DNA of 64,000 nt from Convolutriloba macropyga (GCF_964194025.1 NC_134478.1:9858001-9922000), one strand, 5' to 3'; shown: positions 24,219 to 58,539, counted from the first letter of the stretch. Notes: generated by a model from the sequence alone, not told the origin. Made by a program: numbers and translations.

Positions 24219-25854
24219 CTAAAAAACATAAATTATTGGATTAAAAAAAAACAATTTACGAATTATACCTTCACGTTGAAACGCAAGCAGACGTTTGAGA
24301 AATGATCGGCGTGAAAACCAGTCCCCCCCACCTCCAAAAAACTGCTTATCAATCATTTTATATCTTAAATTGTTTTCATTTCGTTAAATCTTATCCTCAT
24401 GAATTTGTCATCAAGGTCTGTCATTGATTTATGTTAACTTTTTAGATTATACGTCAGTAGTAACAAACCTATACACCCTAGACCACTTTTTGGCACATTT
24501 TCCCCAAACATGTTCGATCATGCGCGCGGATGAAAAGTTCTTGGCAATTATTCCCTGTATGTTAGGATTGTTGCCTGAAAATTTAATGGACTTACCATTT
24601 TGAACAGGACATGTTGGCTTGCCTCATTAATAAGGTATATAAACACACTGTGGAGAATACTGTATGTAAACCCGGCAAATGCCTAAGGGCTTTAAATCCA
24701 CTCTATATTTGTCATGAACACTTTTGCGTAGAAATCTGGGCTTCTAATGTGAATAAACTATATATTGGTATTGCGTAATCAGGGTTAATTCCTGCATACG
24801 CAACTTTGAAGCACACAAGTTTATAAGTTTATAAGGGATATTTAAACCCTGTGAAGAAGATTGTTTGTATACAAACGTTTGCAGGCTATAAATCCAGTGA
24901 AAACTTTTGCGCAGTAGCAGAAATCTGGGTGTCTAATGTAAATAATCTATGTATTGGTATTGCGTATGCAGTCTCACGTTGAAGATTTTGTTTTTTAACT
25001 ACATGTGAAACGTCTGGGTAGGAAGCGTTCTACTTTCTGATGAAATTATTACCTAAGGGCTATTTTTAGAACACAAACTCAAACTCGAACTCGTCTGGCT
25101 CAGACTGTTAATAGACTTCCCTTTCATTTATTACACAATAAGCCATATGATTCAGACGTATTACATTTTGACAAAATTCGTATCCGAAAACAACAAGTTC
25201 GAACACGATAAAAGGAAGTAATTGATTCTTCAATAGAATTTATATAAAAAAGGAACAAAAAAGCATTCTGAAAGATAAAAATTTACTGAAACTTTGACCT
25301 CATCACTTGTTGTTTTGTCCAGCAAAGACCCATTGACAGGGAAGACAATCTTCGATTAGAAAGAACACAAGTTGAGAGTAACTTCTACCCCCGCAATTTA
25401 AATCAGGTTAATTCATCATTTGAATGAAAAGAAATCATCGTTTGAAGTTGTACTGAGAGTGAAGTCCTTGAGGAGTAAGAAAAGTATAGAAACATATTGT
25501 TTTTAGTTTTGAAGGATCTATCAGAATAACGAGTAGTGTCAAGAAGAACAGTTGGGTGGAACAACATCTTGTCACTTTGGTTGCAGAGAATACAAAGACA
25601 AAAAAGACGGAAAAAACCTTGTTTGAATTCCGAGCGCTTCAAAAACAAATCAGGAAGCAAAAAAAGGAGAAAATCTGGAAACCAGATGAACAGCATTTTG
25701 TTTGCCTGTCATCAGAGCGCATCCCTAAGCAAGAGGAGTGTTTCAAAACAGAAAACGTGTGCAAAGTAAGTTAAAAACTTCTTTTGTCTTCATGTAGCTC
25801 CTCCATCATTTCAACCTATATAACTCATCCACGGATCAAAACATGGTAGTCGGA

Positions 25855-28240
25855 AAACATCAATTTTGCTCACATAGTATACATATGAGTCATCAAAGGT
25901 CAATTGTACATCATTTTTTTCCTCTTAATGTACAAGTCCTAGAGAAAAGTTTCTTAAGAAAAGGTTGTTCCATTAGTGAAAACTAACACAAAACTACTTT
26001 AAAAAACATCAATTTTGCTCACATAACATATATATGAGTCATCAAAAGTCAATTGTACATCATTTTTTTCCTTCTAATGTATAAGTCCCAGAGAAAAGCT
26101 TCTCAAGGAAAAGTTGTTCCAATAGTAAAAACTCACTCAAAATTACTTTAAAAAACATCAATTTTGCTCACATAATATATGTATGAGTCATCAAAGGTCA
26201 ATTGTACATCATTTTTTTCCTCTTAATGTACAAGTCCTAGAGAAAAACTTCTTAAGGAAAAGTTGTTCCAGTTGTAAAAACTAAAACAAAACTAATTTAA
26301 GAAACATCAATTTTGCTCACAACATATATATGAGTCAACAAAGGTCAATTGTACATCATTTTTTTTCCTCTTAATGTACAAATCCTAGAGAAAAGTTTCT
26401 TAAGGAAAAGTTGTTCCATTAGTGAAAACTAACACAAATATACTTTGAAAAACATCAATTTTGCTCACATAACATATATATGAGTAATCAAAAGTCAATT
26501 GTACATCATTTTTTTCCTTCTAATGTACAAGTCCTAGAAAAACTTCTTAAGGAAAAGTTGTTCCAGTTGTAAAAACTAAAACAAAACTAATTTAGGAAAC
26601 ATCAATTTTGCTCATATAACATATATATGAGTCATCAAAGGTCAATTGTACATCATTTTTTTCCTCTTAATGTACAAGTCCCAGAGAAAAGTTTCTTAAG
26701 GAAAAGTTGTTCCAATAGTAAAAACTAACACAAAACTACTTTAAAAAACATCAATTTTGCTCACAACATATATATGAGTCATCAAAGGTCAATTGTACAT
26801 CATTTTTTTTCCTCTTAATGTACAAGTCCTAGAAAAACTTCTTAAGGAAAAGTTGTTCCAGTTGTAAAAACTAAAACAAAACTAATTTAGGAAACATCAA
26901 TTTTGCTCATATAACATATATATGAGTCATCAAAGGTCAATTGTACATCATTTTTTTCCTCTTAATGTACAAGTCCCAGAGAAAAGTTTCTTAAGGAAAA
27001 GTTGTTCCATTAGTGAAAACTAACACAAATATACTTTAAAAAACATCAATTTTGCTCACATAACATATGTATGAGTCATCAAAGGTCAATTGTACATCAT
27101 TTTTTTCCTCTTAATGTACAAGTCCTAGAAAAACTTCTTAAGGAAAAGTTGTTCCAGTTGTAAAAACTAAAACAAAACTAATTTAGGAAACATCAATTTT
27201 GCTCATATAACATATATATGAGTCATCAAAGGTCAATTGTACATCATTTTTTTCCTCTTAATGTACAAGTCCCAGAGAAAAGTTTCTTAAGGAAAAGTTG
27301 TTCCAATAGTAAAAACTAACACAAAACTACTTTAAAAAACATCAATTTTGCTCATAAAACATATGTATGAGTCATCAACGGTCATTTGCACATCATTTTT
27401 TTCCTCTTAATGTACAAGTCCCAGAGAAAAGTTTCTTAGGGAAAAGTTGTTCCAATAGTAAAAACTAACTCAAAATGACTTTAAAAAACATCAATTTTGC
27501 TCACATAATAAATGTATGAGTCATCAAAGGTCAATTGTACATCATTTTTTTCCTCTTAATGTACAAGTCTTAGAGAAAAATTTCTTAAGGAAAAGTAGTT
27601 TCATTAGTGAAAACTAAAACAAAAACTAATTGTAGAAACATCAATTTTGCTCACATAACTTATGTATGAGTCATCAAAGGTCAATTGTACATCATTTTTT
27701 TCCTCTTAATGTACAAGTCCTAGAGAAAAACTTCTTAAGGAAAAGTTGCTCCAGTTGTAAAAACTAAAACAAAACTAATTTAAGAAACATCAATTTTGCT
27801 CAAATAACATATATATGAGTCATCAAAGGTCAATTGTACATCATTTTTTCCCTCTTAATGTACAAGTCCTAGAGAAAAGTTTCTTAAGGAAAAGTTGTTC
27901 CATTAGTGAAAACTAACACAAATATACTTTAAAAAACATCAATTTTGCTCACATAACATTTGTTTGAGTCATCAAAGGTCAATTGTACATCATTTTTTTC
28001 CTCTTAATGTACAAGTCCTAGAGAAAATTTTCGTGAGGAAAAGTTGTTCCATTAGTGAAAACTAACATAAAACTACTTTGAAAAATGTCAGTTGCGCTCA
28101 CATTACATATATATGAGTCATAAAAAGTCATTTGTACATCGTTTTTTTCCCATAAATGTACAAGTCCTAGAGAAAAATTTCGTGAAGAAAAGTTGTTCCG
28201 TTAGTGAAATTTAACACAAAAATGTTATAAAAAATAACAA
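25855..28240 (+). repeat. 149-bp satellite array, left arm (about 16 units; degenerate units continue to about 29850)
   Basis: Anchor caattttgctc recurs at 25861, 26010, 26159, 26308, 26456, 26603, 26752 ... 27940, 28089, 28238. Confidence 0.96.
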
Positions 28241-31200
28241 TTTTGCTAACATAATTGATATATAAGTCATCAAATGTAATTTGCACATTTTTTTTCCTCT
28301 TAATGTTCAAGTCATTGAGAAAAACTTCAACAATTTTTCAACAATTTCATAAAAGAGTCAACAAAGTTTATTTGTACCTCAGTTTTTTCCTCTTAATTTA
28401 CAAATCTAGCGGAAACTTTGTTTTGTTGAGGTTGTTTCCTTAGTGAAAACTAGTAATAAAATACTAAAATTGTCAGTTTCGTCAATACAAAATATCTATT
28501 TTGTATTAGTCCCGTAAAGTTAATTATACTCATTTTTTTCCTTTTTAAATTACAAGTTCCAGAGAGAAAACTGTTTCGTAGTGAAAACTAAAACAATACT
28601 TGAAAAAGTATCACTTTTGTTTACATGAAGTATAAATAAGTCATCAAAGTTTGCTTGTGCATCGCCCCTCCTAAATTTACAACACCAGAACAAAAAAATT
28701 CTCATGTAAAAGTTGTTTCATGTGTCACCATGTGTCATCTAAATTTATGTGAGAGTCATCATAAGTACATCTCTTTCTCTTAGCTTACTAGTTGCAGTGA
28801 AAAGTTCCTTCTATAAATTTGTTTTGTATCTAAAGATAGCATAAAAAACCTAAAAGTGTATCAATTTTGCTCATAAAAGGTAAATATGAGTATATGTGAA
28901 ATAAAAATCAAATAAAATCATTTCTTTCTTCTTAAAGAACAAGTCTTGGAGAAAATCACAGGTAAAAAAAGTACATTCATTTATGAAAAATAAAGCGGGA
29001 TTTTTTAAAATGTTTTAGTTTGTGTCAAAAAAACATACAATGAGTCATCAAAGGTTTATTGTACATCGTTTTTTTCCCTCATAATGTACAAGTCGCAGTG
29101 AATAATTCATCAAACAAGAAACTCTTTCATTGGCAAAATTTAACAAAAACTTGCTTTACTTTGTATAAGTTATTTTCATATAACATATGTACGAGTCAGC
29201 AAACGTCAATGATCATCATTTTATTCCACTTTAGGTACAAGTATCGGGCAAAGGTCTTTCATTAAAAGGTTTTTCGTAAATTAGAACTCATACAAAACTA
29301 CTTGAAACTTTACGCAAACTAAAATGAGACTCAATTTCCCTTCATAATACACAAATCTCTGAGAGAAACCTTCAGAGACAAAATTTGTCAAGAAAATCTC
29401 GATCAATCAGCAAAAAAAACTAACAAAAAATACTCAAAAGAGTATCAGTTTTGTTCACGAAAACGTAAATGAGTCCCTAAAAGTCGTTTTTAAATCATAT
29501 TTCTCCCTCTTAATGTACCCAGAGATTAGATATTTAGAAAAAATAAAGACATAGATATTTAAAAAAATGTCCTGGAGAAATAATTCCTGAGTAAAATTTG
29601 ATTCATGCGGAAAAAATAACTCAAAATCTTTTCAAAAAGTATGAACCTCGGTCATATAAACTATAAATGAGTCATTACTAGTAAACAAAAGATCATTTAT
29701 TATATTTCAATGTACAAGCAGTAGAGTGAAACTTATTCAATGAAAATGAGTTTTCTGAAAAAAAAATGTTCAAAGGAACATCTACTTTATGCACGTACAT
29801 TACGTATGATTCCTCCAGGCTCAGAAATACACTATCTTAGATCACATAATGTACCATATTACAGCATTTTTTTTTGAAATTTTTTTTACTAGAGAGTTGT
29901 TTTGAAAGTAAGTTTGTCAATGGAAGCTTAAAAGAAATCAATTTCGTGCTCATTGCCAAGAAAGAAATGTTCGATTGTTTATATTTTCCTATCTCTCAAG
30001 GTACATGTGTTATACCAAAAAATACTTGATGATAATTTCTTAAGGGTGAATCCCGAAGCCGAAACATTTAATGGCGCTTCAATGTCAAGCTCATACGCTA
30101 TTTTTAATTAATCAAAATTTAATTAGACCTCGCTTGATAAGTCTTCGGTGATAAATTTACGTTAAAAAATTCTCCATTAAGATTTAACAAAAAAAATTGA
30201 TTGTACATGTAAAAACTCAATTTCTTTGTTATAGGCGTCGCACAGCAATTTTTTTTGTTACAAAGATTTGTATCATGGATATTTACGTTGACAAGTTATA
30301 CAAAACAAACATGAATAATTGACATAACTAAAATTGATAAATTGATTGAGCAATAGCTCTTTTATACTTTAATCCATAAGGTTAACGGAACAATACTTCA
30401 AGACAGACGCTTCAATGCTTAAAGTTTATCAATATTGTCTACAAGCGCTGATCCAAAGTATTCAAAGATCAGCAGTAATTATAATTTTTTGAAGAGTGAG
30501 AACTCAGACCAAATTGTGTTAATTGTTACTATGTATGAGTTGTAATTATCCTATTTACGTTTTACTCAGTGTTAATTTTTTTTGTATAAGTAGCTAGAAG
30601 ACATCAACATTTAAGAGTTTTGCATAAAACAAAGTTAGGAATTTTTTTCCAAATATGGTAGTCAAAAGATTTGTTGTTGACTGTGCAAACTGGTTTTTCG
30701 TAACATAATTTTAACGAGACAAAGTTACGCACTTGCAACTAAAATCATTATCTGTTTTCCTTTTTTTTTTGAAAAACGAAGCAATCAACCTTGCATGCAC
30801 TTAGAGTTCTTTCTGGTAGGTTTCTGTGCATGCATGGTTGATTGCTTCGTTTTTTAAAAAAAGAAAAACAGATAATGATTTCAGTTGCAAGTGCGTAACT
30901 TTGTCTCGTTAAAATTATGTTACGAAAAACCAGTTTGCACAGTCAACCACAAATCTTTTGACTACCATATTTGGAAAAAAATTCCTAACTTTGTTTTATG
31001 AAAAACTCTTAAATGTTGATGTCTTCTAGCTACTTATACAAAAAAAATTAACACTGAGTAAAACGTAAATAGGATAATTACAACTCATACATAGTAACAA
31101 TTAACACAATTTGGCCTGAGTTCTCACTCTTCAAAAAAATATAATTACTGCTGATCTTTGAATACTTTGGATCAGCGCTTGTAGACAATATTGATAAAGC

Positions 31201-33199
31201 TTAAGCATTGAAGCGTCTGTCTTGAAGTATTGTTCCGTTAAACTTATGGATTGAAGTATAAAAGAGCTATTGCTCAATCAATTTATCAATTTTAGTTATG
31301 TCAATTATTCATGTTTGTTTTGTATAACTTGTCAACGTAAATATCCATGATACAAATCTTTGTAACAAAAAAATTGCTGTGCGACGCCTATAACAAAGAA
31401 ATTGAGTTTTTACATGTACAATCAATTTTTTTGTTAAATCTTAATGGAGAATTTTTTAACGTAAAATTATCACCAAAGACTTTTCAAGCGAGGACTAATT
31501 AAATTTTGATTAATTAAAAATAGCGTATGAGCTTGACATTGAAGCGCCATTAAATGTTTCGGCTTCGGGATTCACCCTTAAGAAATTATCATCAAGTGTT
31601 TTTTGGTATAACACATGTACCTTGAGAGATAGGAAAACATAAACAATCGAACATTTCTTTCTTGGCAATGGGCACGAAATTGATTTCTTCTAAAATGCTG
31701 TAATATGGTACATTATGTGATCTAAGATAGTGTATTTCTGAGCCTGGAGGAATCATACGTAATGTACGTGCATAAAGTAGATGTTCTTTTGAACATTTTT
31801 TTTTTCAGAAAACTCATTGTCATTGAATAAGTTTCACTCTACTGCTTGTACATTGAAATATAATAAATGATCTTTTGTTTACTAGCAATGACTCATTTAT
31901 AGTTTATATGACCGAGGTTCATACTTTTTGAAAATATTTTGAGTTATTTTTTCCGCATGAATCAAATTTTACTCAGGAATTATTTCTCCAGGACATTTTT
32001 TTTAAATATCTATGTCTTTATTTTTTCTAAATATCTAATCTCTGGGTACATTAAGAGGGAGAAATAAGATTTAAAAACGACTTTTAAGGACTCATTTACG
32101 TTTTCGTGAACAAAACTGATACTCTTTTGAGTATTTTTTGTTAGTTTTTTTTGCTGATTGATCGAGATTTTCTTGACAAATTTTGTGTCTGAAGGTTTCT
32201 CTCAGAGATTTGTGTATTATGAAGGGAAAATTGAGTCCCATTTTAGTTTGCGTAAATTTTCAAGTAGTTTTGTATGAGTTCTAATTTACGAAAAACCTTT
32301 TAATGAAAGACCTTTCCCCGATACTTGTACCTAAAGTGGAATAAAATGATGATCATTAACGTTTGCTGACTCGTACTTATGTTATATGAAAATAACTAAT
32401 GCAAAGTAAAGCAAGTTTTTGTTAAATTTTACCAATGAAAGAGTTTCTTGTTTGATGAATTATTCACTGCGACTTGTACATTATGAGGGAAAAAAACGAT
32501 GTACAATAAACCTTTGATGACTCATTGTATGTTTTTTTGACACAAACTAAAACATTTTAAAAAATCCTGCTTTATTTTTCATAAATGAACGTACTTTTTT
32601 TACCTGTGATTTTCTCCAAGACTTGTTCATTAAGAAGAAAGAAATGATCTTATTTGACTTTTGTTTCACATATACTCATATTTACCTTTTATGAGCAAAA
32701 TTGATACAATTTTAGGTTTTTTATGCTATCTTTAGATACAACTTTTACATGAGAATTTTTTTGTTCTGGTGTTGTAAATTTAGGAGGGGCGATGCACAAG
32801 CAGACTTTGATGACTTATTTATACTTCATGTAAACAAAAGTGATACTTTTTCAAGTATTAATTTAGTTTTCGCTACGAAACAGTTTTCTCTCTGGAACTC
32901 GTAATTTAAAAGGAAAAAAATGACGTATAATTAACTTTACGGGACTAATAGAAAATAGATATTTTGTATTGACGAAACTGACAATTTTAGTATTTTATTA
33001 CTAGTTTTCACTAAGGAAACAACCTCAACAAAACAAAGTTTCCGCTAGATTTGTAAATTAAGAGGAACAAACTGAGGTACAAATAAACTTTGTTGACTCT
33101 TTTATGAAATTGTTGAAAAATTGTTGAAGTTTTTCTCAATGACTTGAACATTAAGAGGAAAAAAAATGTGCAAGTTACATTTGATGACTCATATATCAA

Positions 33200-35160
33200 T
33201 TATGTTAGCAAAATTGTTATTTTTTATAAAATTTTTGTGTTAATTTTCACTAACGGAACAACTTTTCTTCACAAAATTTTTCTCTAGGACTTGTACATTT
33301 ATGGGAAAAAAACGATGTACAAATGACCTTTTATGACTCATATATATGTAATGTGAGGGCAACTGACATTTTTCAAAGTAGTTTTATGTTAGTTTTCACT
33401 AATGGAACAACTTTTCCGTACGAAAATTTTCTCTAGGACTTGTACATAAGGAGGAAAAAATGATGTACAATTGACCTTTGATGACTCATATATATGTTTT
33501 ATGAGCAAAAGTGATGTTTCTTAAATTAGTTTTGTTTTAGTTTTCACTAATGGAACAACTTTTCCTTAAGAAATTTTTCTCTAGAACTTGTACATTAAGA
33601 GGAAAATAGTGATGTACAAATGACCGTTGATGACTCATACATATGTTTTATGAGCAAAAGTGATGTTTTTAAAGTATATTTGTGTTAGTTTTTACTATTT
33701 GAACAACTTTTCCTTAAGAAACTTTTCTCTGGGACTTGTACATTAAGAGGAAAAAAAATGATGTACAAATGACAGTTGATGACTCATACATATGTTTTAT
33801 GAGCAAAATTGATGTTTTTTAAAGTAGTTTTGTGTTAGTTTTTACTATTGGAACAACTTTTCCTTAAGAAACTTTTCTCTGGGATTGTACATTAAGAGGA
33901 AAAAAATGATGTACAATTGACCTTTAATGACTCATACATATGTTATGTGAGCAAAATTGATGTTTTTTAAAGTATATTTGTGTTAGTTTTCACTAATGGA
34001 ACAACTTTTCCTTAAGAAACTTTTCTCTAGGACTTGTACATTAAGAGGAAAAAAATGATGTACAATTGACCTTTGATGACTCATATATATGTTATGTGAG
34101 CAAAATTGATGTTTCTTAAATTAGTTTTGTTTTAGTTTTTACAACTGGAACAACTTTTCCTTACGAAGTTTTTCTCTAGGACTTGTACATTAAGAGGGAA
34201 AAAATGATGTACAATTGACCTTTGATGACTCATACATATGTTATGTGAGCAAAATTGATGTTTTTTAAAGTATATTTGTGTTAGTTTTCACTAATGGAAC
34301 AACTTTTCCTTAAGAAACTTTTCTCTAGGACTTGTACATTAAGAGGAAAAAAATGATGTACAATTGACCTTTGATGACTCATATATATGTTATGTGAGCA
34401 AAATTGATGTTTCTTAAATTAGTTTTGTTTTAGTTTTTACAACTGGAACAACTTTTCCTTAAGAAGTTTTTCTCTAGGACTTGTACATTATGAGGAAAAA
34501 AATGATGTACAATTGACCTTTGATGACTCATACATAAGTTATGTGAGCAAAATTGATGTTTCTTAAATTAGTTTTTGTTTTAGTTTTTACAACTGGAGCA
34601 ACTTTTCCTTAAGAAATTTTTCTCTAAGACTTGTACATTAAGAGGGAAAAAATGATGTACAATTGACCTTTGATGACTCATATATATGTTATGTGAGCAA
34701 AATTGATGTTTCTTAAATTAGTTTTGTTTTAGTTTTTACAACTGGAACAACTTTTCCTTAAGAAATTTTTCTCTAAGACTTGTACATTAAGAGGGAAAAA
34801 ATGATGTACAATTGACCTTTGATGACTCATACATATATTATGTGAGCAAAATTGATGTTTTTTAAAGTAATTTTGAGTTAGTTTTTACTATTGGAACAAT
34901 TTTTCCTTAAGAAACTTTTCTCTGGGACTTGTACATTAGAAGGAAAAAAATGATGTACAATTAACTTTTGATGACTCATATATATGTTATGTGAGCAAAA
35001 TTGATGTTTTTTTAAAGTAGTTTTGTTTTAGTTTTCACTAATGGAACAACCTTTTCTTAAGAAACTTTTCTCTAGGACTTGTACATTAAGAGGAAAAAAA
35101 TGATGTACAATTGACCTTTGATGACTCATAAGTATACTATGTGAGCAAAATTGATGTTTT
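33200..35160 (-). repeat. 149-bp satellite array, right arm (about 13 units, reverse orientation)
   Basis: Anchor gagcaaaa(t/g)tgatg recurs every ~149 bp from about 33503 to 35143, plus the same two degenerate inner units as the left arm. Confidence 0.96.
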
Positions 35161-36834
35161 CCGACTACCATGTTTTGATCCGTGGATGAGTTATATAGGT
35201 TGAAATGATGGAGGAGCTACATGAAGACAAAAGAAGTTTTTTAACTTACTTTGCACACGTTTTCTGTTTTGAACCACTCCTCTTGCTTAGGGATGCGCTC
35301 TGATGATAGACAAACAAAATGCTGTTCGTCTGGTTTCCAGATGTTCTCCTTTTTTGCTTCCTGATTTGTTTTTGAAGCGCTCGGAATTCAAACAAGGTTT
35401 TTTCCGTCTTTTGTGTCTTTGTATTCTCTGCAACCAAAGTGACAAGATGTTGTTCCACCCAACTGTTCTTCTTGATACTACTCGTTTTTCTGATAGATCC
35501 TTCAAAACTAAAAACAATATGTTTCTATACTTTTCTTACTCCTCAAGGACTTCACTCTCAGTACAACTTCAAACGATGATTTCTTTTCATTCAAATGATG
35601 AATTAACCTGATTTAAATTGCGGGGGTAGAAGTTACTCTCAAATTGTGTTCTTTCTAATCGAAGATTGTCTTCCCTGTCAATGGGTCTTTGCTGGACAAA
35701 ACAACAAGTGATGAGGTCAAAGTTTCAGTAAATTTTTATCTTTCAGAATGCTTTTTTGTTCCTTTTTTATATAAATTCTATTGAAGAATCAATTACTTCC
35801 TTTTATCGTGTTCGAACTTGTTGTTTTCGGATACGAATTTCGTCAAAATGTAATACGTCTGAATCATATGGCTTATTGTGTAATAAATGAAAGGGAAATC
35901 TATTAACAGTCTGAGCCAGACGAGTTCGAGTTTGAGTTTGTGTTCTAAAAATAGCCCTTAGGTAATAATTTTATCAGAAAGTAGAACGCTTCCTACCCAG
36001 ACGTTTCACATGTAGTTAAAAAACAAAATCTTCAACGTGAGACTGCATACGCAATACCAATACATAGATTATTCACATTAGACACCCAGATTTCTGCTAC
36101 TGCGCAAAAGTTTTCACTGGATTTATAGCCTGCAAACGTTTGTATACAAACAATCTTCTTCACAGGGTTTAAATATCCCTTATAAACTTATAAACTTGTG
36201 TGCTTCAAAGTTGCGTATGCAGGAATTAACCCTGATTACGCAATACCAATATATAGTTTATTCACATTAGAAGCCCAGATTTCTACGCAAAAGTGTTCAT
36301 GACAAATATAGAGTGGATTTAAAGCCCTTAGGCATTTGCCGGGTTTACAGACAGTATTCTCCACAGTGTGTTTATATACCTTATTAATGAGGCAAGCCAA
36401 CATGTCCTGTTCAAAATGGTAAGTCCATTAAATTTTCAGGCAACAATCCTAACATACAGGGAATAATTGCCAAGAACTTTTCATCCGCGCGCATGATCGA
36501 ACATTTTTGGGGAAAATGTGCCAAAAAGTGGCCTAGGGTGTATAGGTTTGTTACTACTTACGTCCCCATTTGAATGTAATTTTGTATTTATCTGGAGAAT
36601 TAACGTATTTTTTTCTTGTTTGTCGCTCCAGTGGTAGAACATAGTGCCATTCCTCGACATGTACAAACGAAAATTCTGATCTCGACTTTTTTTGGGTTAA
36701 AAAAACAGACCTTCGTAGTGAAGGATTTAACATAAGCTTAAATAACTTTTACAGAACAGCTGCGCTAGCTGCGTAAATTATTTTGAAACAAATGCTTGCG
36801 TTTCAACTTTTAATCACGGTTTATAGAAAAATAC

Positions 36835-39388: not shown

Positions 39389-40443
39389 TTATACATGTGC
39401 TAATTGGTTTATATATTCAGCAAATAATTCCATTCCTTTAAAATACTGAAACTGATCCAATTTTTCATTTTGTGAATGAGTAGCGTCATCGCAGAGGCCC
39501 ATTGGTATCATAATAACATTTTTGCCCAACGCTTCTTGGAAGTAGAGCGTAACTGGGACTGTCCCCCCGTCTCGGATCAAATCTGGCTCGACCCCGAAAA
39601 TCTTTTTGACAGCAATTCGAGCGGCTTTGTATTGGGGACCGTTAAAATCCGAAACCCACGCTTTCACGCCATGATCTAACACGACTTCTAATTTATTGCA
39701 ACTTTCTATTTTCAAAAACTCGTTTTCTAGATAAGATTTCACAAGATGTTCAACTTTGTCAAGCTCCATGTTTGGAACTAATCGGATTGAAAATTTGCCG
39801 GTTACTTTTTTGGGAATTACGGTTTTACACCCAGAATCGTTAAACGCGCCCTCAATTCCATGAATTGACAATGACGGATAACGCCACAAACCCATAGCCA
39901 ATTCTTCCTTAGAATCATGAATTAATTTAGGAGCGCTGATATCTCTTCTGAACTGTTCAGGATCAAATTCCAGGCTAGAGTACACTTTTTCTTCATCTTC
40001 TGTTAATGGAACAACCGAATCATAAATTCCAGGAATTAAAATATGGCCTTGAGAATCGACCAATTTTGACATCAAGGTCATAAGGTCAACCATGGCCTCT
40101 GAAACTGCGCCTCCGTAAACACCAGAATGTAGATCTTTTTTGGCGCATTGAACAGAAACAAAAAAGTAAGCCATACCTCTTGCTCCATATGCCAAACAGG
40201 GTTTTTGGGTCCCCAACCACTCGTTGTCCGAGATACAAACATAATCAACGTCTTTCAGAAATTTATCTTTCTCATCGTGAATTAATTTCTCAAGTCCAAC
40301 AGATCCGCATTCTTCCATACCTTCAAAAATGAACTTGATATTGACGGGAATTTCGACGTCGCTTTTTTGGAATGCTTCGATAACATTGAGCCATGCAAGA
40401 GCTGGACCTTTGTCGTCAGAAGCTCCCCGGCCGAACATCCGGC
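39389..40443 (-). CDS. CNDP2: M20 family cytosolic non-specific dipeptidase (carnosinase-2-like), exon 2
   Basis: GRGASDDKGP, FEGMEECGS, ISDNEW, DLHSGVYGG, RYPSLSIHGIEGAF, GKFSIRLVP, HSQNEK; ctag|GC acceptor in phase with exon 1. Confidence 0.93.
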
Positions 40444-41514
40444 CTAGATAATTTCGCAAGCACAACATTACGTAAAGTAAGAACTTGACTTAATGAGTTT
40501 TAATGTGAAAGCCTACATGAATTTGAGGTTAGGAACTTTTAAACTATTCTGGCTTATTTTGTCAAGTTAATTGTGGCCAACCGATGCCTCTTTTTGGAGA
40601 TGACTAGAAGTGAAATCATCAAAAAGTGATTCTAAGCGAAAAAATGAAAAAGAATTGATTTCATTGTTGAAGAGACGTTACTAATGTTCTGGTTTCTTCC
40701 GCAACGATTGAGGGCTACATTTTGTGCAAAATGTTCAATTTTCCCTCCTTTACAAGCTTCAATTTTTTCAACAGCAAAAAATTTAATTGACAATTAACTT
40801 GGTTAACATAACGGTGGTTATCAATACAACCGATTAACAGTTTATGAATCACATTTCATCAGTCTTTTTCATTTTTCAACAAGTAAAATGATTGCTTTTA
40901 TTCTCCCCGCTTTGTAACAATTTTGTATCAAAAAGAAAAGCTGCGCCTTTTATCACCTTTGTCGTATATATTGACATCTTAAACGGTTTCCACTCATCAT
41001 AATTCAAAACGGCGAATCCATCCTCAAATTTTGCTGAAATCAACTTATTTTAGTAGTTTCTTTTAATAAAAGAAAAGCTGCTTGAAACAGCGCTCTTCAA
41101 TGGTGCGTTTTCATCAAGAATGCTATTTTGACTGGGAAGAGAAACATTGAAAAATTGTTTTTATTTATAGCCCGATCTTTGTATTTGCAATACTGCATCT
41201 TTCTACCAAATAAACGAGCTTCAAATTCGAACGCATTATTTCTTCACGAAACTTTTATCCCTCACATTAAAAATATACTTCAAATGAAGCTATGCAATTC
41301 GTCCTAAAACAGTGAAAACTTTTACTGATAAATGAAAATTTTTAGCTTTTTGATGGGAATTTTGTTTGTTACTAGCCTGTCATTCCAGTGTAAAACCGCA
41401 CATAATTTCTACTTCAGAAAAACTTCAATATTTAACAACCACAAACATTTTTATAGACTACCATTATATTCTATGCTATGCTGCTATTAAGCGCAATGTT
41501 ACTCATTATATGAC

Positions 41515-47044: not shown

Positions 47045-47282
47045 AGTGATCAGTTCTTTTGAGAAAATAGATAAATTTCAGAACATTTCTTGGGAAGGTA
47101 GATAGAGCGCAATGCATAAAATAGAGCATCCTTACACCAAAACACCAGACATAATAGTAGGGTTGACCTTTCTTACTACTTAGTCGGGTGTTTTGGTGTA
47201 CGAGTGCTTTCGCTTTAATGCGCTGCGCTCTATCTACCTTCCCAAAAAGTATTCTGATATTTATTTATTTTCTCTGATCACT
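47045..47282. mobile_element. ~240-bp palindromic (foldback) MITE; left-truncated duplicate at 48992-49199
   Basis: gggaaggtagatagagcgca...acaccaaaacacc pairs with ggtgttttggtgt...tgcgctctatctaccttccc; outer agtgatcag / ctgatcact. Confidence 0.8.
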
Positions 47283-50200
47283 GCGACAAAACAAATTTAC
47301 ATTGAATTGTCCACTGTCTATGAGTTAAATGTGTGAGCGCTACTCAAGTTTTTCTGTTTTCTCTAAAATACGGAAATTTGAATCTTTTTGTCTACATCCG
47401 ATTGTTCCAAGAGTACGAGAAAATCAACAATAATCTACTTCGTGAGCGACTCTTTAAGCATACTATTCAAATCCAATATAATTCCTTCACACGAACTAAA
47501 ACTCTCAATTATTATTATTGATATTATTATTATTGTAAAGAATTTAATGATCTAAAAATCATAAACGACACTGTCCCGTTTCAGTTCAGTTTACGTCAGG
47601 CATTCAAAAGTCTACAGTTTTTGAGATTGCAGTCACAGGCCATTCGCCATGTACATGAGTCCAATTCAATGTAGCACTGCTCAAAGTGTCTCCACGTCCA
47701 TTGGAGTATATTACTCTACGCGTCCATGTCGGTTATCTTGATGAGGTTGGATAATTGGTTCGCTAATTGTTGAGAACGAAACCAGAAGTTTTGTTCCGCA
47801 ACAGCGAGCACTGGTCTGTGGCATTCGTACGTACGGTTTTTAGCCGACCGAGTAATAGAGCCGGCATCATGATGCTTCAGATTAACAAAGCAGAAATTGC
47901 AGTGAAGAAATTGTACTTTTTGCGAAAAAAAGGCCAAGTAACTGTAAACAACATGGTACAGGGAGGAAATTCAACTTCACTAAAACAGACTTGTAGTCAG
48001 CTTGTCGAAGGACCCATTTACAAGCTTTTCTCTGAATGCGCTCGACAAAATTATACCTTCAACGTTAGGGTAGTAATCAACCGACGAGTAAGTAATAATG
48101 CGCAGTATCATGCTCTTGTAATAAATAAGCTTGTTTCTACAGTTTAAATAATATGGTGTATTGCGCTTGAGCACATAAAGAAAATTCAAGCCTTTCGAGG
48201 CTCTTTGCTTCAAATGAGGGATCCAGTTAAGATTGTTGCTAACGATTACGCCTAGGTATTTTTCTTGGTTTGAATGTTCTAGAGAATGACCATCAAGATA
48301 TAACTTTCATTGCTCGTGCTACTGATTGATAACTGCGCATATTTGTCTAGATTGCAAGTCATTCTATTCTGTTCTCAACGCTCCATTGGTGTCATTAGAT
48401 GTCATTTAATTAATCCTGGAAGTTTAATCCACCATTTCTAAGAAATATAAATTTTACGTCATCGGCAAAGAGAAGAGGTTCAGAGAGGCAACAAAGAGTA
48501 GGTAAATCATTAATAAATCCAGTGAGCAGTAACAAAGATAAAATATACCCTTGAGGAACACCACTGCCAGCAATAAAGGAAGATGAAACACAGTTTTCTA
48601 CGTTTGCACATTGAGATCGATGTGGGAGGTATCATTCAAGTAGTTTTAAAAGTTTCCCCGAATACCTGTTCCATGCAGTTGTGTTAGAAGCCCATGATTG
48701 ACACGATCGAAGGCCTTTCCGAAGTCAGTGTAAACTATATCGATTTGTTTATGTTGCAAACAGCCTTGTAGTTTTTGTCGAGATATACTACAAGATTCAC
48801 TGCACAAGAGCAACCTCTTCGAAAACCAAATTGGCTGTTGTGGAGATAGGGTTTGTAGTGGGGATATAAATTGCAAAACACGCAAAACTCTAGGACCTTT
48901 TCAGAAGTGCTTAATAAAGATACCAGTCGGTAATATTCAACGTTCACTTTATTTCCCTTTTTGATAATTGAAGTGAAAACAGCACTTAAACTTCAGAACA
49001 TTTCATGCGAAGGTAGATAGAGCGCAATGCATAAAAAGTAGAGCATCCTTACACCAAAACACCAGACTGAATAGTAGGGTTGATCTTTCTTACTACTTAG
49101 TCTGGTGTTTTGGTGAACGAGTGCTTTAGCTTCAATGCGCTGCGCTCTATCTACCTTCCCAAAAAGTATTCTGATATTTATTTATTTTCTCTGATCACTG
49201 CGACAAAGTTAATTTACATTAAATTGTCCACTGTCTATGACTTAAATGTGTGAGCGCTCCTCAACTTTTTATGTTTTCTCAAAAATACGGAAATTTGAAT
49301 CTTTTTGTCTACATCCGATTGTTCCAAGAGTACGAGAAAATCAACATTAATCTACTTCGTGAGCGACTCTTTAAGCATACTATTCAAATCCAAAATAATT
49401 CCTTCACACGAATAAAAATTCTCATTTATTATTATTATTATTATTGTAAAGGATTTAATGATCTAAAAATTATAAACGACACTGTCCCGTTTCAGTTCAG
49501 TTTACGTCAGGCAATCAAAAGTCTACAGTTTTTAAGATTGCAGTCACAGGCCATTCGCCATGTACATGAGTCCAATTCAATGTAGCACTGCTCAAAGTGT
49601 CTCCACGTCCATTGGAGTATATTACTCTACGCGTCCATGTCGGTTATCTTGATGAGGTTGGATAATTGGTTCGCTAATTGTTGAGAACGAAACCAGAAGT
49701 TTTGTTCCGCAACAGCGAGCACTGGTCTGTGGCATTCGTACGTACGGTTTTTAGCCGACCGAGTAATAGAGCCGTCAACATGAATCTTCAGATTAACAAA
49801 GCAGAAATTGCAGCGAAGAAATTGTACTTTTGGCGAAAAAAAAGGCCAAGTAACTGTAAACAACATGGTACAGGGAGGATATTCAACTTCACTAAAACAG
49901 ACTTGTAGCCAACTTGTCGAAGGATCCATTTAGAAGCTTTTCTCTGAATGCGCTTGACTAAATTATACCTTTAACGTTAGGGTAGTAATCAACCGACGAG
50001 TAAGTAATAATGCGCATTATCATGCTCTTGTACTAATTAAGCTTGTTTCTATAGCTTAAATAAAATGGTGTATTGCGCTTGAGCACTTAAAGAAAATTCA
50101 AGCCTTTCGAGGCTCTTTGCTTCAAATGAGGGATCCAGTTAAGATTGTTGCTAACGATTACGCCTAGGTATTTTCCTTGGTTTGAATGTTCTAGACAATG

Positions 50201-50898
50201 ACCATCAAGATATAACTTTCATTGCTCGTGCTACTGATTGATAACTGCGCATATTTGTCTAGCTTGCAAGACATTCTGTTCTCAACGCTCCATTGGTGTC
50301 ATTAGATGTCATTTAATTAATCCTGGAAGTTTAATCCACTATTTCTATGAAATATAAATTTTGCGTCATCGGCAAAGAGAAGAGGTTCAGAGAGGCAACA
50401 AAGAGTAGGTAAATCATTAATAAATCCAGTGAGCAGTAACAAAGATAAAATATACCCTTGAGGAACACCACTGCCAGCAATAAAGGAAGATGAAACACAG
50501 TTTTCTACGTTTGCACATTGAGATCGATGTGGGAGGTAACATTCAAGTAGTTTTAAAAGTTTCCCCGAATACCTGTTCTATGCAGTTGTGTTAGGAGAAG
50601 CCCAAGACTGACACGATCGAAGGCCTTTCCGAAGTCAGTGTAAACTATATCGATTTGTTTATGTTGCAAACAGCCTTGTAGTTTTTGTCGAGATATACTA
50701 CAAGATTCACTGCACAAGAGCAACCTCTTCGAAAACCAAATTGGCTGTTGTGGAGATAGGGTTTGTAGTGGGGATATAAATTGCAAAACACGCAAAGTTC
50801 TAGGACCTCTTCAGCAGTGCTTAATAAGGATACCAGTCGGTAACTTTCAACGTTCGCTTTATTTCCCTTTTTGATAAATGAAGTGACAACACAGCACT
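47077..50898. repeat. Tandem duplication of ~1.91 kb (47077-48987 / 48992-50898) covering the LINE 3' part and ~430 bp of its flank
   Basis: Paired ORFs 47333/49250, 47767/49678, 48646/50553; same disabling lesions in both copies. Confidence 0.95.
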
Positions 50899-56114: not shown

Positions 56115-58539
56115 CTTACCGAAGCTTTTCAATGCTGTCAAGGCAAAGCACGTATGGTCCTGGGCGACGACTTCAATTGCAGACTTGACTCATCCGAAAG
56201 AGGCAACTCACTTTGCGAATTTTTAATTAATTGGAATCTTCATTGTGTTAACGATATTAAAGAGGTAACGTACGAATTTCAGTACGGTAAAAGCGTTATC
56301 GATTTATTTTTCGTAAGCAAGGAACTCCTAGAACATTTTAACGAGATAAAGATCAACAATTCATTGTTAACAGCACAAGCCGGTTTCTTGCTGCTTTGAT
56401 CTAAAACACAGACAAGATATAGCTGAAAGCAGAAAGAAGCAAATGCGTAAATTTGATATTGAACAATTGAACGAACGAATGAAAAGCGTTCAAAATCCAC
56501 ACGATAACAACGCATTGGACACATCGTATGACGAATTCGCCAAGGCTATTCAAGAATCGGCAACCGTTATGCATGAAAGAAAATCACCGAAATGGTTCAA
56601 AAGAGAACTGTACATATTGCACAAGCAGCTGAAAGCTGGATACAGACAGACATAAAGCAGATTGTGATTACTTTAAAATGAAAAGAGCCTTTAAGAAACT
56701 TTGCAGAAAACACAAACTGATGCATGAAATAGATCGCGAAAGTTTCATAATCAGAAAAGCGGAATCGGAAAGGCGAGAATTTTGGAAAATTCTGAAATCA
56801 AAGAAAGTTTTAACAAAAGTATCTGGAATTACAATTCCAGTTTTGGAATCATATTTCGAAGGTCTATTTAAAGCTGAGGGCGAAATATCGGATAAACTTC
56901 TAGACGAGCAAAACTTAGGAAACCACGATTATTGTTTTTCAAACTGGAAATATACCGGGTATTTGAATGATCCAATAACACTGGAAGAAATTACCGATGA
57001 AGCTTCAAAGTTAAAAGCTGGTAAGGCAGCGGGACCAGATGGAATAACCAACACTAGTATTAAATTAGGTTTTCATCCAATGCAAAGATACGTATTCCAT
57101 TTGTTTAACCTCTGCTTTGCGGAGCATAATGTACCCCGAATTTGGAAGTTATCATATATTAAACCACTGTACAAAGGCAAAGGGAGCAAAGCAGAACCAA
57201 GTTCCTACAGAGGCATTAGCCTATTATGTTGCATGTACAAGTTGTTCACGGGTATCATTTACCAGCGTTTGCGATCATGGGTCGAGAAAAATCAAATTTT
57301 ACCACCAAGCCAATATGGTTTTAGACGCAAACTGTCAACAATCGACGCAGTTTCGCACTTAAAAAGAGCAATCAAGCATAACATCAGCTGCAGTGGCAAA
57401 TACTATGCCTGCTTCATTGACTACGAATAAGCTTTCGACTTCGTGAATAGGAACCTGCTGCTTACAAAACTGATCAAAATGGGGCTCCATGGGAACATTC
57501 TACACACAATAAAATCAGTGCTAAAATGCAACTTTCAACAGATCCTTGATGGAGAATTCCTGTCAAACGAGATTGAACAGAAAACAGGAGTAGCACAAGG
57601 AGACAAACTTTCACCACTCTTGTTTAGTTTATTCATAGCTGATTTTTTTTTTGAGTTGAAATGCAAGGGTCTAGATGTTATATTTTACGCTGATGACTTA
57701 GTACTTGGGAGCCATAGCCAAGGCCAACTACAAAAAAGTTTGAATAATCTGAACACGTATTGTAGCAGGAATTATTTGAAAATTAATGTAAACAAGACAA
57801 AATGCATGAAATTTAGAAGAGGTGGCCGTTTAGCTGTCGATGACAAATTCTATATATCGAAAAAAGAAGTTGAATTTGCTAACACCTTCTGTTATCTAGG
57901 TGTAATTTTTTCGAGCACGTTATCTCCCAGTCATCATCTAAGCCATCTAATGAACAAAGCTTATCAATCAGTAGCTTCAATAAACCAGAAACTAAATCTG
58001 CAGAAAGTCAACTTCATTTCAGCACAACAACTCTTTAATTCAATTGTTTTTCCAGCCTCAACTTACGGATTAGAGACGTACATCGATGAACTTTTTGAAA
58101 TAGATATAAAACAACATTACCGGAAATCAGAAGCCGTTTTTTGGAAAAGTTGGTGCGGAGTAAGCAAGTACACCTCAACCACAACGCTTTTAAACAAATT
58201 GATGTTTCATGATATACACGGACTGAAGGACTGCCCGCCAAAACACAGGAGAATAATTGCAAAATTCTATGCCAATGGACTGCACAATAATTTTTGTTGT
58301 ATGGAAGGTTGTTATCAATGGGAAGAAAACTTATGTGTGTGCAGATTTTGCGAAAGAACTCTTTTGTCAACAGACCATATTCTTCATTGTAGTCACTTTT
58401 TAAATTTGACACCTTTACAGAAGTTCTGAAAACTCTTAAACAGTTAAATTTAATGCTCATTTCTGAATCTGTAAGTAATTTGGACAATTTCTCAGTGTGA
58501 TCTGATGTTTAATTCAATCTTCTTCTCTTCTTCTTCTTC
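56115..58539 (+). mobile_element. 5'-truncated non-LTR retrotransposon (APE-RT-C-terminal Cys/His motif; RTE-X/L2-like, clade uncertain), disabled; copy 1
   Basis: GDDFNCR, SVIDLFF, KAAGPDGI, YRGISLL, QYGFRR, FIDYE*AFD, GVAQGDKLSPLLF, FYADD, YLGV, CRFC...DHILHC; (TTC)n tail. Confidence 0.92.

Follow-up and report, generated by a model that had tools for sequence, protein, structure and literature searches.

Foldback elements are an architectural class of transposon in which long terminal inverted repeats (TIRs) make up nearly the whole element, with a short or absent middle and no coding capacity, and the foldback families described so far belong to the Mutator or P superfamilies. In Tetris, a foldback transposon of Drosophila virilis related to the MITE DAIBAM, the TIRs consist of a flanking domain, a domain of tandem repeats that varies in number, and an inner domain, and surround a short middle (PMC4079207). 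Only the outermost part of the TIR is shared with other non-autonomous families, few structurally complete copies exist, no autonomous partner is known, and Tetris, which is non-coding, is a source of satellite arrays. Galileo, a P superfamily element with 7-bp target duplications and P-type ends, includes 'two-TIR' copies that consist of long TIRs only, and tandem repeats inside the TIRs differ in number between the two arms of one copy, with TIRs lengthening and shortening over time (PMC3573991). Drosophila FB, placed in Mutator, is of similar build. FB has a longer target duplication than the one described below.

A different set of features defines the Maverick/Polinton virus-like elements, which encode a protein-primed DNA polymerase B (pPolB) and a retroviral-like integrase, together with capsid proteins, an ATPase and a protease (PMC8097293, PMC10748475). 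Vertebrate Mavericks carry the end motifs 5'-(AGT)2//(ACT)2-3' or (AG)3//(CT)3 and perfect 6-bp target duplications (PMC8097293, through which the end motifs of Kapitonov and Jurka 2006, PMC1450207, are cited), with TIRs of 46-1,447 bp and a published size range of 12.7-24.6 kb. Lastly, copy-back or snap-back defective genomes of linear replicons are inverted duplications around a short loop in which both ends are the same terminus; snap-back defective genomes occur in adenovirus, and palindromic derivatives occur in protein-primed linear plasmids. Such genomes arise anew during replication from a parental genome with which they are collinear, and are not known to be inherited as chromosomal families.

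A locus combining foldback architecture with Maverick-type ends lies in a 64,000-nucleotide stretch of the acoel worm Convolutriloba macropyga (GCF_964194025.1, NC_134478.1:9858001-9922000), here called the window. An earlier note, made from the sequence alone, had described a 12.1-kb whole-element palindrome with Maverick/Polinton termini and a perfect 6-bp duplication, and that observation is confirmed and strengthened by the present analysis. The parts of the locus, in window coordinates, are as follows.

24450-24455, no strand: left copy of the 6-bp target site duplication (TACGTC), present once in the empty allele.
24456-36558, no strand: the whole palindromic foldback element (12,103 bp), without recognisable genes.
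24456-24600, plus strand: left terminal module of about 145 bp, starting (AGT)2, the only part conserved in all relatives and the candidate cis-acting site.
24456-25853, plus strand: left flanking domain (region A).
25854-28323, plus strand: left array of the 149-bp satellite, 16.6 units.
28324-30800, plus strand: left inner domain (region C), parts of which are degenerate relatives of the 149-bp unit.
30801-30825, no strand: asymmetric 25-nt central spacer, the loop of the foldback.
30826-33125, minus strand: right inner domain (mirror of region C).
33126-35160, minus strand: right array of the 149-bp satellite, 13.7 units.
35161-36558, minus strand: right flanking domain (mirror of region A), ending (ACT)2 and including the right terminal module at 36414-36558.
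36559-36564, no strand: right copy of the 6-bp target site duplication (TACGTC).

The ends of the element read AGTAGTAAC (from 24456) and GTTACTACT (to 36558), and the 26-nt terminus occurs only at these two places in the window, in inverted orientation, against 0 expected by chance; no other copy or fragment lies in the window. The left arm (24456-30800) and the right arm (30826-36558) are reverse complements of unequal length, 6,345 against 5,733 bp. The flanking domain is 98.85% identical between arms (16 mismatches in 1,398 bp), while the inner domain is 97.9% identical with 10 indels, the left arm carrying 111 and 59 extra bases. The 149-bp arrays are 96.0% identical in register, mirroring each other unit by unit with three single-unit indels. 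The ACTACT hexamer was also seen in the consensus unit given by Tandem Repeats Finder, an observation on which no weight is placed. The centre, a short asymmetric loop flanked by a short natural palindrome, is predicted to fold as a DNA hairpin with z = -13.9.

No open reading frame in the arm exceeds 97 aa, and an exact look-up of the 97-aa frame found no record. None of the 20 frames of at least 40 aa in the flanking and inner domains of the left arm has a Pfam match at E below 0.01, and thus the earlier note's statement that no pPolB, integrase, ATPase or capsid gene is present holds at this sensitivity. The element is at most a non-autonomous dependant, not a Maverick proper.

The empty allele, which had been named beforehand as a check on the insertion, exists. 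A contig from a related assembly (ENA ERZ25071359, ctg19334; L001), with flanks 97.3-97.7% identical to those of the window, joins position 24455 directly to 36565 through a single TACGTC, an exact empty site without a footprint, showing that the whole palindrome went in as one unit. The insertion is thus recent, and still polymorphic.

The palindrome is not a one-off. A second copy at another locus (L006), about 12% diverged, has the same domain order and the same asymmetric spacer, and at least nine further loci share the terminal module, although all related copies come from one ENA assembly. Two loci, L004 and L007 (with its extension, L011), have the same end, flanking domain and array, and the left flanking domain of the window is 84-91% identical to L004, L006 and L007. 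A further two loci, L008 and L009, have the same end, another subterminal segment and then the array, whereas L010 has the same end and an unrelated interior, and a Pfam scan of 10 open reading frames of L010 gave nothing significant. Look-ups of protein clusters for the reading frames of related copies returned only singletons or one pair. Eleven proteins read across the terminus were found, each on a different contig, of which four were looked up. Six ends start AGTAGTAA and L006 starts AGTATTAA, all next to unrelated flanks. Six of seven independent loci start AGTAGT and one starts AGTATT; the six bases next to seven ends show no clear target preference. In an alignment of eight ends from seven loci, positions 1-8 are 88% invariant and positions 55-125 are 85% invariant, against 19% beyond position 144, and the terminal module is therefore conserved far above the rest of the element.

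Repeat number varies both between arms and between copies, with 16.6 and 13.7 units in the window, 16.8 and 68.4 in L006, at least 66 in L004 and at least 56 in L011. The 6-bp duplication is measured only once, in the window copy, because the arrays of L004 and L011 run past the 10 kb examined, L006 ends before its right terminus and L010 holds one end only. The two arms of a copy evolve in concert: at 173 + 34 sites (207 in total) both arms of a copy agree while the copies differ, against 0 + 2 sites with the alternative patterns. The window arms are 98-99% identical and the L006 arms 90-94%, while the two copies are about 88% identical to each other.

The domain structure, the variable repeats and the short middle are those of Tetris, as are the lack of coding capacity, the sharing of only the outermost part of the TIR with other non-autonomous families, the small number of structurally complete copies and the lack of a known autonomous partner, and the element may likewise be a source of satellite arrays. 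Tetris, however, has duplications of 8-10 bp and is assigned to Mutator, and its TIRs reach 1.7 kb, as compared to arms of about 6 kb or more and a middle of only 25 nt in the present case. Neither the 8-10 bp of Mutator nor the 7 bp of P matches the 6-bp duplication observed here. In contrast, the (AGT)2//(ACT)2 ends and the 6-bp duplication correspond to the signature published for vertebrate Mavericks, and the length of 12.1 kb is close to the lower end of their size range; terminal inverted repeats and an animal host are further shared features. Among the superfamilies reviewed, Polinton gives 6 bp and Ginger 4-5 bp, while IS3EU/GingerRoot gives 6 bp but has TA..TA (rarely TG..CA) ends (PMC10045372), which differ from the AG..CT ends of this element. 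Dada, with duplications of 6-7 bp, has no TIRs and inserts only in small-RNA genes, namely tRNA or snRNA genes (PMC3706591), whereas this element is all TIR and its site is not in an RNA gene, the only Rfam or ARAGORN hit being a tRNA-Gly at 22401-22471, 2 kb away. IS3EU/GingerRoot and Dada are rejected on these grounds.

The best explanation is that the locus is a foldback-type, non-autonomous DNA transposon of a small, satellite-carrying, multi-copy family, probably moved by a Maverick-type integrase, a reading held at a probability of roughly 0.65. What the sequences demonstrate is that the element entered the chromosome as one unit with a 6-bp staggered-cut duplication, that the palindromic build and its centre are inherited by diverged copies, that the arms of a copy evolve in concert and then drift apart after insertion, and that array length changes by whole units. 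It is an inference, on the other hand, that the element encodes nothing and is moved in trans by an enzyme that reads the terminal module, as is the proposal that this enzyme is most probably the retroviral-like integrase of a Maverick/Polinton (about 0.65-0.7), the only superfamily among those reviewed that combines 6-bp duplications with (AGT)2//(ACT)2 ends. The Maverick link rests only on an end motif of six bases, reported for vertebrates, plus the duplication length. Moreover, TIRs of 6 kb are far beyond those reported for Mavericks, whose TIRs of tens to about 1,500 bp surround a 13-25-kb coding body, the inverted repeats here cover the whole element and the arms are filled with a satellite, and no remnant of a Maverick gene was detected in any arm or in L010. 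Also inferred are the causes of concerted evolution: either one arm is recopied or repaired against the other in a single-stranded hairpin intermediate at each round, or the arms undergo gene conversion in the chromosome. The first palindrome could have arisen by copy-back on a linear replicon, by foldback priming at a break, or by loss of the middle of a long-TIR ancestor. Literature searches for palindromic, foldback or non-autonomous Mavericks, and for Polintons in acoels, found no such description.

The alternative that survives best, although it is considered unlikely, is a foldback element of another or an undescribed cut-and-paste superfamily, whose transposase happens to make 6-bp duplications and for which the AGTAGT start is a coincidence. 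Consistent with this view, the architecture is that of Tetris, FB and Galileo, foldback structure is thought to arise independently in different lineages (PMC4079207), no Maverick gene lies near any copy, and the TIRs are far longer than in known Mavericks. Against it, the superfamilies reviewed that have 6-bp duplications are Polinton, IS3EU/GingerRoot and Dada, the last two with the discrepancies noted above; the first eight bases are kept in ends that are otherwise 10-16% diverged, and equal the commonest published Maverick motif; and the empty site is exact and carries no footprint.

A more speculative possibility, thought improbable but compatible with the data, is that the family is a gene-less, satellite-carrying parasite of Mavericks whose palindrome is part of its life cycle. 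In this view, a single strand would snap back into a 6-kb hairpin at each round, or the element would exist as a half-length hairpin, and one arm would then be recopied or repaired from the other. New insertions would start with identical arms, giving an LTR-like clock, and the element would seed 149-bp satellite arrays around the genome. The 207 concerted sites against 2, the conserved loop, and the greater arm identity of the young copy than of the old one are compatible with such a cycle, but equally allow ordinary gene conversion between the arms of a cut-and-paste foldback element.

The interpretation offered in the earlier note is only partly supported. It proposed that one Maverick end plus about 6 kb of adjacent sequence was copied back on itself during strand-displacement synthesis, and that the product was then integrated in trans by a helper integrase. 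The whole-length palindrome with a short asymmetric loop, the Maverick-type ends and duplication, integration as a unit, and the absence of recognisable genes all agree with the proposal. As a one-off event, however, it is very unlikely and is contradicted by L006, because the same build and spacer in a diverged copy at another locus indicate that the palindrome was inherited, not made for this insertion. Nothing shows that the arm is Maverick sequence; it has no detected coding remnant, is mostly the 149-bp satellite and degenerate relatives of it, and shares only about 145 terminal bases with all relatives. The architecture is the classical foldback one, as in Tetris, FB and the Galileo two-TIR copies. 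Copy-back remains possible only as the founding event of the whole family, which is itself regarded as doubtful. The note's further suggestion that the element is of packageable size has no support either way, other copies being at least 19.4 kb, with arrays of 56-68 or more units.

Two remaining explanations can be set aside. Palindromic chimeras are an artefact of long-read libraries, and the structure is described here from assembled sequence alone, but a chimeric read or mis-join is very unlikely given that the two flanks differ from each other and are contiguous, with exactly one TACGTC, in an independent assembly, that the arms differ by 1-4% and by 15 indels, and that an independent contig of another assembly has the same palindromic build. 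Insertion of a half element followed by foldback priming at a break, a process that makes inverted duplications in yeast and in cancers (PMC10622511), is contradicted by the duplication flanking the whole palindrome, the two intact outer termini, the empty site, and the presence of the same centre at another locus.

How Mavericks/Polintons move is known only from inference. If the Maverick link fails, the locus represents one more foldback family, in a phylum where few transposons have been described. If it holds, a gene-less family that keeps nothing but a Maverick-type terminal module of about 145 bp, and still inserts with a clean 6-bp duplication, would define the minimal cis-requirements for Maverick integration, would show that these virus-like elements support non-autonomous dependants, as cut-and-paste transposons do, and would add a third superfamily to those that have produced foldback elements. 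The presence/absence polymorphism, with its exact empty site, gives a dated and natural integration event, and the concerted evolution of the arms and the mirrored satellite arrays make this a tidy case for two wider questions: how large palindromes stay homogeneous, and how transposons seed satellite DNA.

The window is animal DNA and not human. G+C is 34%, and the three runs of N (9958-10157, 10973-11102 and 13362-13605) lie far from the element. The features recognised outside the element are the following.
3533-8815 (plus strand): a Ty3/gypsy-like retroelement body, in which a zinc-knuckle Gag, reverse transcriptase with RNase H, and an integrase zinc-binding domain lie in separate ORFs, so that the reading frame is interrupted at least three times; a further 421-aa ORF has no Pfam match, and the masked N runs follow the body.
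22401-22471 (plus strand): tRNA-Gly(CCC), 2 kb left of the insertion, the only RNA gene found in the window.
39392-40468 (minus strand): a long exon encoding a CNDP2-type M20 dipeptidase, read as one 359-aa open frame (about three quarters of the 470-480-aa protein without an intron) and lying 2.8 kb from the element's right end.
47070-50890: a tandem duplication of about 1.9 kb, with copies 94-99% alike.
56678-58429 (plus strand): two adjacent ORFs that each carry part of a reverse-transcriptase domain, hence one interruption, in a second retroelement.
The dipeptidase is 73% identical to the protein of Convolutriloba macropyga and 71% identical to that of Symsagittifera roscoffensis, both acoels, and 97% identical to a protein of ENA assembly ERZ25071359.

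The structure described in the earlier note holds. The element runs from 24456 to 36558, starts AGTAGTAAC and ends GTTACTACT, and has TACGTC on each side. The 26-nt terminus occurs only at the two ends, against 0 occurrences expected by chance, and the arms are reverse complements around a 25-nt spacer, with a centre that folds as a hairpin (z = -13.9). Each arm has three domains, which are arranged as follows.
24456-25853: left flanking domain, 1,398 bp.
25854-28323: left array of a 149-bp unit, 16.6 units.
28324-30800: left inner domain.
30801-30825: central 25-nt spacer.
30826-33125: right inner domain, the mirror of the left.
33126-35160: right array of the 149-bp unit, 13.7 units.
35161-36558: right flanking domain, the mirror of the left.

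The flanking domains are 98.85% identical between arms, and the inner domains are 97.9% identical, with 10 indels. Parts of the inner domain are 72-78% similar to the 149-bp unit, so they look like decayed satellite. Whereas units within one array are only 88-91% alike, the two arrays, when aligned in register, are 96.0% identical with three single-unit indels; the arms were therefore copies of one another down to the order of unit variants, and whole units were gained or lost afterwards. The hexamer ACTACT, which is the element's 3' end motif, occurs in about a quarter to two thirds of the 149-bp units, always in one orientation, both in the two arrays of the window and in the arrays of three related loci described below (L004, L006 and L011). 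This count was made on natural sequence, and about 0.06 per unit is expected from base composition, although the hexamer may reflect chance inheritance within the unit. No ORF exceeds 97 aa, and none of the 20 ORFs of at least 40 aa in the flanking and inner domains of the left arm matches a Pfam family.

That the palindrome is a true insertion is evident from the contig encoding the 97%-identical dipeptidase (L001; ERZ25071359, ctg19334). L001 is collinear with the window on both sides, its positions 1452-13919 matching window 48987-36559 and its positions 13914-15022 matching window 24455-23333, yet it lacks the 12.1 kb and reads a single TACGTC at the junction. It is thus the empty allele that the earlier note had named as a check, and it is also single-copy for the 1.9-kb tandem duplication at 47070-50890. 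The flanks differ by 2.3-2.7% in substitutions and the arms by 1.2-2.1%, which fits an insertion about as old as, or younger than, the split of the two genomes, if the arms were alike when it went in. The exact empty site also argues against an assembly artefact and against formation of the palindrome in place.

The element belongs to a family, and the palindrome is inherited within it. Two short ORFs of the flanking domain, which are probably not genes, served as handles in protein searches; the 97-aa ORF found two relatives, and the ORF that reads across the terminus found eleven, each on a different contig of the same ENA assembly. The loci examined among these relatives are as follows.
L006 (a whole contig of 19,380 bp): a second palindrome, consisting of an (AT)n flank, a flanking domain at 334-1760, an array at 1940-4440 (16.8 units), an inner domain, a centre near 6280, a mirrored inner domain, an array at 8419-18614 (68.4 units), and a mirrored flanking domain cut by the contig end.
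L004: the same end and flanking domain, then at least 66 units in one orientation (36-9858).
L007, extended as L011: the same end and flanking domain, then at least 56 units in one orientation (L011 11897-20169).
L008 (3305-4238) and L009 (3152-4359): the same end of about 140 bp, a different subterminal segment (93.6% alike between the two loci), then the array.
L010 (460-4643): the same end of 141-157 bp, then 4.2 kb unrelated to anything else here, with no array and no Pfam match.

The asymmetric spacer of L006 aligns with that of the window. None of the loci fetched carried a gene with a Pfam hit inside the element, and look-ups of relatives of the element's own short ORFs returned only non-coding copies. 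In the ENA assembly the 149-bp arrays reach 56-68 or more units, against 14-17 in the window and in the left arm of L006; the two arms of L006 differ fourfold. The same terminal module of about 145 bp is attached to at least two other interiors, namely the second subterminal segment followed by the satellite in L008 and L009, and the 4.2 kb with no satellite and no recognisable gene in L010. A short dispersed repeat, about 81% alike between occurrences, lies next to the L010 insertion (L010 194-302) and 1.3 kb left of the window's insertion (window 23022-23137; L001 15089-15166).

Six ends from five loci start AGTAGTAA, as does L010, whereas L006 starts AGTATTAA, and all lie next to unrelated flanks. 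Eight ends from seven loci were aligned, and the share of invariant columns was scored.
Invariant columns along the aligned ends, by element position
Positions 1-8: 88%
Positions 9-28: 40%
Positions 29-54: 77%
Positions 55-125: 85%
Positions 126-144: 34%
Beyond position 144: 19%
A terminal module of about 145 bp is thus the only part under visible constraint, and it is the natural candidate for the site read by the mobilising enzyme.

The identity of that enzyme is inferred from the ends and the duplication alone, whereas the insertion as a unit and the inheritance of the palindrome rest on the sequences themselves. Published hallmarks of Mavericks are perfect 6-bp duplications and the end motifs 5'-(AGT)2//(ACT)2-3' (the commonest) or (AG)3//(CT)3, with the repeated motif thought to serve jumping-back in protein-primed replication (PMC8097293). 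Duplications are 6 bp for Polinton, 4-5 bp for Ginger, 3-6 bp for LTR elements, and 6 bp for IS3EU/GingerRoot, but the last has TA..TA ends (PMC10045372). Dada has 6-7-bp duplications but no TIRs, and lives inside small-RNA genes (PMC3706591). Among known superfamilies only Maverick/Polinton fits both features, although this is a signature match and not homology, and TIRs of 6 kb are unlike those of known Mavericks (46-1,447 bp). A Maverick-type integrase is put at a probability of about 0.65-0.7.

The architecture is that of foldback elements. Tetris of Drosophila virilis has a flanking domain, a tandem-repeat domain, an inner domain and a short middle; it lacks genes, shares only its outermost TIR with the MITE DAIBAM, and feeds a satellite, but its duplications are 8-10 bp and it is assigned to Mutator (PMC4079207). 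Galileo, of the P superfamily, has two-TIR copies and unequal repeat numbers in the two arms, with 7-bp duplications (PMC3573991). No foldback or palindromic family with Maverick hallmarks was found in the literature searched.

The earlier note was right about the structure, the ends and the duplication, integration as a unit, and the absence of genes. Its interpretation, a copy-back defective Maverick of possibly packageable size, is only partly supported: the element is not a single copy-back product, and there is no sign that the arm derives from the body of a Maverick. A copy-back, a foldback-primed break, or loss of the middle of a long-TIR ancestor could each have founded the family, with no preference among them in the data. 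Size says nothing about packaging, because arrays differ fourfold between the arms of one copy.

The arms of each copy evolve in concert. Between copies the domains are about 87-89% identical, but within the window copy they are 98-99% identical, and within L006 they are 90-94% identical. In four-way alignments of the two arms of both copies, both arms of a copy agree while the copies differ at 173 + 34 sites, whereas 0 sites group the arms by side and 2 sites show the crossed pattern. Private changes number 43 in the window copy and 155 in L006, spread evenly over the arms. Two causes fit equally, either gene conversion between the arms in a chromosomal source copy, or a single-stranded fold-back or half-length hairpin stage in which one arm is recopied or repaired from the other. 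From these site patterns it follows that the palindrome and its loop predate the split of the two lineages, yet each lineage kept its arms alike until about the time of insertion.
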